This document shows positions 56,301 to 59,300 of a DNA stretch of 64,000 nt, piece after piece. The notes below the pieces were generated by a model that searched no databases, was not told the origin of the DNA, and was given only the letters and a program-made list of their open reading frames with translations. The position numbers and the translations under genes were made by a program. Source of the DNA: Macrostomum lignano (taxonomy: Eukaryota); assembly GCA_002269645.1 (NCBI GenBank), contig NIVC01000665.1:1-64000 (forward strand), given 5' to 3'. Each line of letters opens with the position of its first letter. Position 1 is the stretch's first letter.

Positions 56301-59300
56301 GGCCACCGTTCAGCAGCAGAGGCGAATGATCGTAGGGCAGCTTGGTGGTGCAGATGTGCTCGCATGTCGGACCTTGAGACAGGGAATTCCCAAGGTCGGG
56401 CAGGGGAAACTCCATTAGTGTCTATATATAGCAATAGTTCAACTCTGATTGATCAGTGTCAACGCGACTAAATGCAGCACAGATTTAAGCAAGCTTAGCC
56501 ACAGCGAGTGCAAACCATACTACTAATTTTGTAATCGGGAAGTAATAAGTAGCAGTTGTTGCTCTAGCACAATTGAAATTGATAGAATGACTACTAACTG
56601 TATGAAAAAGTCCAACTGCACTAATTATGATTTTGAGTAGAATATCAAGTCTAGTAGTAAAATTATTAAATTTATTATTGTGTACTTTTGACTTCTGAAA
56701 TTTAAGCGTAACTCCAATGCGTGCAATGAGTAAATTTTAGCAGTGAATTCAACAGAAAACTAATGAGATACGGGCAGCTCGAATCGTGTGATAAACAAGC
56801 CCAAGGCTAGTGGGACTGGCAAGAAAAAGAAATAAATTTCAGACTTCAATAGACTATCTAGTATTATTAAGATAAAACAGGAGCAATATCAGGATTGAAT
56901 TCCAAAGAAGAAAAGTATGCTTTCGATACATATCGGATGATTAAAAACTCCCCAGTGATTGATCGCCTGCGTGGAGCTATCCCTCCCTCACTGATCCCCT
57001 GCATTGAGTCGGCAGACTTGGTTTGCCTGCCACCAATGAAGCTGGCCTCTCCATCAGCCATGGCTGCGGAGCGCTGCTGACCTGCCGTCTTTCCACCTGA
57101 GCTGTCGGCTGCAACAGCAGCGACCGCGTCAGCCACTAGCAGGTGGGTGAAGACACTGTGCTCGTCGAATGTGATAAAGACCTCCTGTTCGTTGTGTCAG
57201 TCGTTTAGTCAACTTTTTTGTTAGAAAGAAACTAAATTTAAGTAGGAATTGCAAATTGAAAAGAAATGCGTTTTTAGTTAGTAAAAATTAACTTGCCTAC
57301 TGTAAGTAGACTAATTGCAAATATTTAAAAATGCTTTGTTAAGACAAAATCATGGAATCTAATCAATAAATTATCGAATCGTCTTGTGGCCCGCCACTAA
57401 GGCATATGGTTAATTAAATTCACTTGCAACAACAACAGAGAATCACCAGTAATCTGAGGGTCGTCGTCAAACGAAACCGATTAATTATCAACAGGCAGGT
57501 TAGTAACGCAAAACCATCAAAAGCGATTATGGCATTACAAAATTGAATCAGCGAGTAGTTAGTCTATAATGGGGTTTCATATTTACACAAAGTGCCATCT
57601 ATTCGGTGAGTTAGCTTTGGATTACTATTGCACCTGTTAGTTGCTCCGACCACAAAATGCCAACTACAGTATTAATTTACCTTCCACAGCATCTTCCATA
57701 TAATAAGCATCTACGACAACGTCAGTCATAGTAACGAATAAGTTCTGTGGAAATTGTTTTTTAGGTAAACAATCTTTATTATACTGCAAATTTAATATTA
57801 ATAGGCAAAAATCCACGAGAAATATTTGGAGCAATGCGTCAGTTAAGTTGTATTCGAAGACATACCTGATCGTTAAAATTCTGATCCCACATAGCTCCCA
57901 TCGTGCGCGCGTTGAAGTTCGGTATCGGGATCATGTGATCGGTCAGCTGAAATATTTGTTTAAATTATAGAAGAATGTTTTTCGCCACTATACAGCTAGT
58001 GTTAATGGGAAAGGCAATCCGTACACATTTTAAACTTCTAAAAATAGCAGCCAATGACCATGAAGCGCGGATTTCTGCTAAATGTACACTCCACAAACTG
58101 TACCCCTAGATTCTAAAAATAGCCACCAATAGGGGACCTCTATACAACCAGTAAGAACGCCTCCCCATTTTAGGCTAAATGCACATTCAATAATTGCATG
58201 TACATATATAGCAACGATCGGAGAACCCCAAAAAAAATAGCCACCATAGAAACCTGGCTCCCTCACCGGATTGCAGACAAACGCCTCGGCTCTGTCGTCA
58301 AAGATGATCACTCGAGTGCCGTACAAATTTGGAAATATCTTCTTTATTCCGCAGGTATGCTTGATATCATGGGAGAACTCCCAGTCCTCCATGTAAAAAA
58401 AGTACACGCTGCCCGTCTGAAAAACGAATCGAGCGTTCGCTCTTTGTTAAAATTAACGAGATTCCGATTAACGAGACTGTCTAATCGTTTTTTCATACAA
58501 GTCTCTTACATCGGTGCCAAATATGAGAAAATCTGGCGTCAAGTCGTGGCAGGTGATTTTCATGTTGCCCAGACTCTTATCTGGGAACAACCGCCTCTCC
58601 CGCTCCTCATCTCTGGCTCCAGTGGATTCGCCTTCGAGCTGCGGGATTTCCAGTTTTCGAATTCAGATTTATTTTGTTATAATTGAGAAGATTTGTTTGC
58701 TGTTTGCCGGGACCTTTACTCTACACTTTGCATAATTACTCAATGAAAGGTTGGTTTGTTTGACCTGATTAAGCTTAATGGATCGGATTGGTGCGGACTA
58801 AGAATAGCCAGGAAAAAAGTTATAGCACGCCTTTCTTGGTGAAAAGATGAATTACTTAAGTAAAACTAAACAGTTCTACAACAAGAAAGATACAGGATGG
58901 TGGCAACAAACTATTATAGACATAATCAGGCACAGTTTATGTACTTTTTTACAGCCAATACTGTAAGCTAGAAAAGCACCGACGGCTCTGTTTGATCTGT
59001 CTATCAATAATTGAGTAGGAAAATTCAGTTTAGAGAAGAGAAACGATCGAGCTCTTATGAAAGAAGCATGACGAATTTCTATTTGAAATTTTTCTGTCTG
59101 CGTTGATTCTCGTCAACACTGTCAGATTTTACCCTGGCTTTGAGAGTTCGGTAGCTCTGCCGTCCGCTGCTGCTCAGCTGGGACACCTCTGTGCCGTGCT
59201 GTGCGATTGGTTTTTTAGGTCAATTCTTTTATACTTTTAAGCGTAAGCAGTTTTAAAAGATTTAGAAGGGTAAAAATTAATTAATAGTATTACGTCGGGT

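Follow-up and report, generated by a model that had tools for sequence, protein, structure and literature searches.

A candidate pair of mutually exclusive exons in the IFT144/WDR19 gene of Macrostomum lignano

The gene IFT144/WDR19 of Macrostomum lignano, annotated as BOX15_Mlig021619g3, encodes a core subunit of the intraflagellar transport (IFT) complex IFT-A. It lies on the minus strand of a 64,000-nt stretch of contig NIVC01000665.1 (referred to here as the window), and between its constitutive exons 9 and 11 it carries two further exons, A and B, which on sequence evidence are homologous copies of one exon. It is likely that A and B form a mutually exclusive pair derived from a tandem exon duplication, with A as the major form. 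A first inspection of the letters of the window (here, the sequence-only reading) had proposed such a pair. According to this explanation, one exon of 64-67 nt would have been duplicated in tandem to give two homologous exons in series, each encoding the same β-hairpin of the second propeller (residues 571-593 of human WDR19). The length of each exon corresponds to whole codons plus one base, so that the mRNA can be translated only when exactly one of them is used. Transcripts that contain both exons or neither would undergo a frame shift and reach an early stop, and they would presumably be cleared by nonsense-mediated decay. Exon A encodes a short hairpin of the canonical length but with a divergent sequence, and it is the form present in whole-animal mRNA. 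Exon B would have kept the canonical hairpin and lost its original donor, and the use of a downstream donor would add a disordered loop of 43 residues. The gene thus probably makes two versions of the protein, and the version with B would most likely be a minor form or one confined to certain cell types; both the splicing of B into mRNA and a functional difference between the two proteins are inferred.

Gene identity and exon layout

By its domain content and best matches, BOX15_Mlig021619g3 is a clear orthologue of IFT144/WDR19, as the sequence-only reading had assumed. The gene product matches the Pfam families PF23389, PF15911, PF24762 and PF23145/PF23146, and the domain order of WDR19 is present, with a first and a second β-propeller, IFT-type tetratricopeptide repeats (TPR) and C-terminal zinc fingers. 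Comparison with the human WDR19 chains in the PDB by phmmer gave E = 1e-61 over the queried part. The top matches across the whole protein library were WDR19 proteins, and the best representative match was a partial bird WDR19 with 53% identity. The segment encoded by A or B aligns with G571-G593 of human WDR19, within the match to the second β-propeller, in agreement with the earlier assignment of the segment to the β-propeller region.

The gene model, which comprises 19 exons, was assembled by spliced comparison with orthologues. With exon A included it yields a protein of 1351 aa that is an exact match to PAA78810.1 from its methionine, and across exons 8 to 11 the window and the PAA78810.1 locus agree with 100% identity; the locus's own protein record has a length of 1371 aa. 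PAA78810.1 is flagged as partial in GenBank because the open frame extends upstream of the ATG into the 5′ untranslated region. The first coding exon consists of ATGAAG only (Met-Lys, 62335-62330) and is followed by a 388-nt intron to 61941. An ATG supplied by a trans-spliced leader joined at 61941 was considered as well and was ruled out by the annotated mRNA, which has this ATGAAG in an upstream exon.

All the coordinates and peptides given for the two exons in the sequence-only reading turned out to be correct when the minus strand was read again (Table 1). Exons A and B are neighbours, no constitutive exon stands between them, and their identical phases at both ends make them interchangeable; the splice sites of both are ordinary GT-AG sites. 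The combinations of exons 9, A and 11 and of exons 9, B and 11 are both open to the normal stop, with products of 1351 and 1393 aa. When A and B are joined together the first stop appears at codon 612, which bears out the earlier claim that they are incompatible in frame, and when neither exon is used the first stop appears at codon 593. The frame of exon B is open for 105 codons from 57184 and offers four in-phase donors, which correspond to exon lengths of 88, 103, 151 and 193 nt; the shorter forms end at 57097 (88 nt, cag/GTGGAA, a weaker donor), 57082 and 57034. The donor at 56992 is of the GTGAG type, like most donors of the gene, and it is also used in the UniProt model A0A1I8I8I8. The product of exon B consists of 21 residues of the hairpin segment and then an insert of 43 residues rich in Ala, Gly, Ser and Gln. 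The similar length that is looked for in a mutually exclusive pair is not found here (64 nt for A and 193 nt for B, which shortens to 88 nt if the weaker donor is used). The hairpin-coding parts of the two exons are equal in length, and the excess of B is the loop insert. Further downstream, the donor of exon 11 at 56197 (gag/GTGTGT) was set by exact agreement with PAA78810.1.

Family resemblance, variation among gene copies and predicted fold

The comparison of A and B with the IFT144 family was based on a profile of 23 columns built from 105 distinct segments (113 orthologue sequences), from which the M. lignano sequences were excluded. Exon B obtained 18.2 bits in a local HMMER search (E = 1.5e-7), the top score among 6054 phase-compatible pseudo-exons bounded by AG and GT in the window, and its first 23 aa scored 23.9 bits end to end. 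The match of exon A is spread thinly over the segment and reached only 3.4 bits in the local search. Scored end to end, A obtained 13.5 bits and ranked first among 929 pseudo-exons of similar length, the runner-up having 6.1 bits. Among 11,125 AT-rich windows free of stops, just one other reached the score of A (a null of ~1e-4 per window), even though each null peptide had been given the terminal glycine for free. Even so, no orthologue scores as low as A, the minimum among them being 21.9 bits.

The direct similarity between A and B is weak (p ~0.02 by shuffling, with a one-residue gap needed), and no DNA-level similarity between the two exons or their flanks was found apart from AT-rich matches of 18 nt whose offsets were inconsistent. 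The duplication is therefore old, and it is the family profile that carries the argument for it. The homology proposed in the sequence-only reading is therefore upheld through the profile, whereas the direct likeness of the two peptides, which had also been invoked, carries little weight by itself. No third copy of the segment was present in the interval 58266-56373, scanned in all frames. All the 105 distinct orthologue segments (113 sequences) represent a single version of the segment, in contrast to the two versions of M. lignano. In the relatives P0071, P0074 and P0019 this region of the gene is intronless at the three loci read and hence uninformative on the duplication, and a metagenome scan found no relative.

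The assembly contains three copies of the region (g1, g2 and g3), which were aligned from exon 2 to exon 11 (Table 1). Exon 9 by itself has 1 variable site out of 81. The proportion of variable sites in B (2.1%) equals that of its constitutive neighbours, exons 8, 9 and 11 (2.2%). Relative to the local intron rate, the conservation of the two exons has P = 8e-4 for A and P = 7e-6 for B; relative to the lower gene-wide intron rate, the values are 0.025 and 0.015, respectively. Of all the invariant stretches in the interval, the longest two are 57087-56990, which belongs to B, and 57760-57676, which covers A and its splice sites. The acceptors of A and B are identical in all three copies and the donors of both are intact, with the sequence GTAAAT or GTAAAC for A and GTGAGG or GTAAGG for the long form of B. 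One of the copies has an indel 9 nt beyond the 56992 donor, which is consistent with an exon ending there. In this comparison, A and B both vary like exons and not like intron, and within M. lignano the three copies point to purifying selection on each of them.

Two other features of the alignment deserve mention. The divergence between the copies is a mosaic along 61749-56197: in exon 8, g3 is equal to g1 while 5 sites set g2 apart, and in the intron that precedes A, g3 is near g2 and g1 is the one that differs. This pattern hints at gene conversion or recombination between the IFT144 copies. The intron between A and B includes a 62-nt stretch (57633-57572) that is invariant in all three copies, a run length near the chance expectation, and a branch-point-like TACTAAC motif lies nearby (57509-57494), ~310 nt before the B acceptor. 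Each of the two could be a splicing control element.

Base composition separates the two exons. Exon A has a GC content of 0.38 and a GC content at third codon positions (GC3) of 0.33, and in this it resembles the surrounding introns (GC 0.30-0.37). The GC3 of exons 2-9 and 11-16 ranges from 0.63 to 0.88, save that of exon 2, which is 0.43, and the GC3 of exon B is 0.64. Only 0.1-0.5% of the in-frame 63-nt windows of constitutive exons are as AT-rich as A. The low GC3 of A, together with the profile positions that it has lost, raised the possibility that A is a decaying relic, an explanation overturned by the RNA-derived annotation and the comparison of the three copies.

To examine the effect of the exchange on the protein, the second propeller was modelled with AlphaFold2 once with A and once with B, each time from an alignment of 20 sequences. 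The models of both isoforms contain the same two predicted strands (model residues 235-239 and 243-252/254). The block-mean predicted local distance difference test (pLDDT) of the hairpin is 89-94 with A and 94-95 with B, and the extension of 43 residues in B is predicted to be disordered (pLDDT 33-35). As modelled, both exons are compatible with the fold, and the models show no more than this. In trematode orthologues, P0015 among them, this site bears long insertions, which indicates that a loop like that of B is tolerated there.

Table 1. Features of the IFT144/WDR19 gene around exons A and B, their variation among the three gene copies, and neighbouring genes of the window (a slash marks a splice junction)
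Feature	Position	Strand	Description	Sites variable by substitution	Gap columns
IFT144/WDR19 coding sequence (BOX15_Mlig021619g3)	50357..62335	-	19 exons; ATG 62335-62333, last codon ends 50357		
Exon 9, constitutive	57866..57946	-	81 nt, 27 residues; phase 0 end at donor cag/GTATGT		
Intron exon 9-A	57745..57865	-	121 nt, GC 0.30	14.2%	18
Exon A	57681..57744	-	64 nt, phase 0 to 1, ccacag/AAC...GAAG/gtaaat; 21 residues + split G	0/64	0
Intron A-B	57185..57680	-	496 nt, GC 0.34	7.5%	11
Exon B	56992..57184	-	193 nt, phase 0 to 1; acceptor aacag/GAG, donor tca/GTGAGG	4/193 (2.1%)	0
Intron B-exon 11	56373..56991	-	619 nt, GC 0.37	12.3%	63
Exon 11, constitutive	56197..56372	-	176 nt, phase 1 start; (G/S) first, peptide ends LDELTVKE		
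Exons 8, 9, 11				9/407 (2.2%)	0
EDEM3-like mannosidase with PA domain	14060-21170	+			
Dolichol kinase	27836-29710	+	open reading frame 28919-29710 99% identical to Macrostomum lignano dolichol kinase		
PHLPP-like gene	~49000-37500	-	LRR repeats, then PP2C-like part		

Transcript-based annotation and competing explanations

The peptide of exon A is found in all three gene copies in GenBank (PAA62507.1 for g1, PAA79483.1 for g2 and PAA78810.1 for g3) and also in three UniProt models; that of exon B is found in one UniProt model, A0A1I8I8I8, which has the exact 56992 donor. The program TACO, when run with the option --isoform-frac 0.75, discards those isoforms whose expression is under 75% of that of the major isoform. 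This option was applied in the annotation of the NIVC assembly, which, according to the paper that describes it, was built solely from RNA-seq data and a de novo transcriptome by means of StringTie, TACO and TransDecoder. Because the annotation is derived from RNA, exon A is part of a real and predominant mRNA, and because the setting drops minor isoforms, the absence of B from GenBank is to be expected even if B is used. The protein set contains only the longest product of each gene and has the shorter A form at this locus, so that an isoform with the long version of B is apparently not annotated in GenBank. Exon A is therefore presumably the major form and exon B a candidate alternative. The sequence-only reading had allowed for A being a dead duplicate or a chance match, devoid of transcripts and of conservation; its presence in the RNA-seq-derived coding sequences of three copies, where it is invariant, speaks against this. 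The model A0A1I8I8I8 presumably comes from a pipeline of the MAKER type, which could have picked B by protein homology alone. Exon B is missing from the GenBank annotation of each of the three gene copies. Homology-based pipelines tend toward B and RNA-based pipelines toward A, with the consequence that the segment differs between the two public protein sets.

The UniProt and GenBank coding sequences also differ elsewhere in the gene. Exon 2 (61749-61684, 66 nt, in frame) is skipped in UniProt models, one UniProt model has an extra 66-nt exon in intron 6 (~59201-59136) that encodes a peptide of 22 residues, and some UniProt models have a shortened exon 8 (58416-58267) with 15 residues fewer. 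Such differences may reflect errors of prediction or additional alternative splicing.

Several observations weigh against a mutually exclusive pair in which A is the major form. The intron-like GC3 of A is odd for a major exon, and its peptide deviates from the family at three positions, with Thr for Asp in column 7, Ala for Thr in column 13 and Asp at the hydrophobic column 12. Exon B has been seen in the gene model A0A1I8I8I8 only, which counts as weak evidence. The copies do not diverge evenly (~2% in the introns of the 5′ half, 7-14% around A and B), so the significance of the conservation depends on the baseline that is chosen. Exon B has four substitutions, of which two are synonymous and the other two (S>C and T>A) non-synonymous, too few for a ratio of non-synonymous to synonymous rates. 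Exon lengths of 64 and 193 nt are unlike those of most mutually exclusive pairs, and no conserved competing RNA structure was found at A/B. Regarding this last point, the inverted repeats found in the A/B interval in the search for competing RNA pairing were all short and at chance level. The best placed of them (56465-56477 with 56999-57011) was discarded as a competing structure, not being conserved in copy g1. The intron between A and B is far too long, at 496 nt, for steric hindrance to cause exclusion; neither this mechanism nor docking/selector RNA pairing or an incompatibility of U2 and U12 sites was evident for A and B.

Some of these observations would fit a gene in which A is constitutive and B is a retired ancestral exon, an unspliced relic whose decay is still to come. 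The RNA-derived GenBank models of the three copies contain only A, the canonical donor position of B has been lost so that a downstream donor is needed, two of its four substitutions are non-synonymous, and with the gene-wide intron baseline its conservation gives merely P = 0.015. We regard this as rather improbable, since a relic would have to have remained at 2.1% variable sites without indels while the introns on its two sides reached 7.5% and 12.3% (with 11 and 63 gap columns; P = 7e-6 locally). It would also have to have kept the acceptor and a GTRAG donor intact in three copies, and a GC3 of 0.64 amid intron GC of 0.30-0.37, and the longest invariant run of the whole interval lies within B. 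The conservation of B at the nucleotide level is also what would be seen if B, or A and B together, served as a regulated poison exon, by which nonsense-mediated decay would tune the level of IFT144 and no second protein would be made; the stop at codon 612 of the A+B transcript agrees with such a role. However, B alone is in frame and its hairpin is closer to the IFT144 profile than that of A, and a poison exon needs neither family-specific residues, nor the right phase, nor a codon-biased GC3, all of which make this role improbable to a greater degree than that of a relic.

A more radical objection is that intron sequence happens by chance to look like the IFT144 segment at A or at B and that no duplication took place. 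The weak direct similarity of the two exons (p ~0.02, with none at the DNA level) and the 3.4 bits of A in the local search are in line with it. Nonetheless, A is a real exon of an annotated mRNA, which ranks 1/929 end to end and whose score is reached by one other of the 11,125 null windows, B has 18.2 bits with E = 1.5e-7, and the two stand at the sole position of the gene that is fit for the segment and in the right phase. Chance is accordingly a highly improbable source of the resemblance. The tandem duplication that gave rise to a mutually exclusive pair is the explanation we prefer to all of these.

With respect to function, the sperm of Macrostomum is not known to have flagella, which leaves the epidermal, sensory, protonephridial and gut ciliated cells as the candidates in which the isoforms could act; a role in a sperm cilium, mentioned in the sequence-only reading, is doubtful. 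It is possible, although we put this forward only tentatively and consider it unlikely, that the B isoform is limited to one class of ciliated cell (for instance sensory or protonephridial cells and not the locomotory epidermis), where it would alter the binding of IFT-A or its cargo. If the B isoform were cell-class specific, it would represent a core subunit of IFT-A specialised for cilium type by mutually exclusive splicing.

Known exon pairs and the remainder of the window

Mutually exclusive exons derived from tandem duplication are known from FGFR2 (IIIb/IIIc), PKM (exons 9/10), SNAP25 (5a/5b), the SCN alpha genes (5a/5b) and, in Drosophila, 14-3-3zeta and Mhc. As is reported for FGFR2, the joint inclusion of A and B breaks the frame, so that the reading frame itself enforces exclusivity. 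Like the members of the known pairs, A and B are adjacent, homologous and of the same phase class, and they would swap one structural element and leave the rest of the protein identical. Unlike them, they are unequal in length, have no DNA similarity, differ in GC3 (0.33 vs 0.64) and have RNA evidence for A alone. Mutually exclusive tandem exons have been the subject of surveys (PMC8373072, PMC9741552 and PMC9013439). Scans of introns for homology have also recovered tandem exon duplicates that were unannotated (Ivanov and Pervouchine, PMC9013439), and a related example is that of the copies of SCN alpha exon 5 (PMC12772994). As reported, these cases resemble the present one in that a copy missing from the annotation lies in the adjacent intron and is known by protein homology, phase and splice sites. 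They are unlike it in that here the unannotated copy, B, is closer to the family consensus and the annotated copy, A, is the divergent one.

Full-text searches of the literature for mutually exclusive exons yielded no published case from WDR19/IFT144, from other genes of intraflagellar transport or from Macrostomum, which is in keeping with the earlier remark that no such pair was known in IFT144. WDR19 is also absent from the main text of a survey of the substitution of tandem-duplicated exons in human. Compared with IFT144/WDR19 of other animals and of protists (structures 8BBF/8BBG, 8FGW, 8BDA, 8HME and 8F5O), the M. lignano protein has the same architecture of propellers, TPR and zinc fingers. 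A and B would thus represent a known splicing arrangement in a gene without a previous example, and what is unusual about it is that the main copy is divergent and the canonical copy has an added loop.

IFT-A is usually seen as one fixed machine of six subunits, and how its cargo differs among cilium types is an open question. An exon pair that swaps a blade hairpin and a loop in a core subunit would, if true, be a simple and testable route to two versions of IFT-A. M. lignano has several cilium types, and methods for RNA interference and in situ hybridisation are available for this animal. Transgenesis is also reported, in the paper on the NIVC annotation.

The rest of the window is notable for its repeats and for three neighbouring genes (Table 1). 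Between exons 11 and 18, each intron contains a long tandem array, of up to 150 copies. The arrays occupy the intervals 55903-56193, 54679-55429, 53629-54269, 52742-52955, 51722-52016 and 50497-51547, with periods of 4, 5, 19/40, 37, 5 and 33 nt, respectively, and many of them yield long spurious open frames on both strands. Rfam and tRNA scans of the window gave no matches. The neighbouring genes occur in the same order at a second locus, with 90-99.5% identity.

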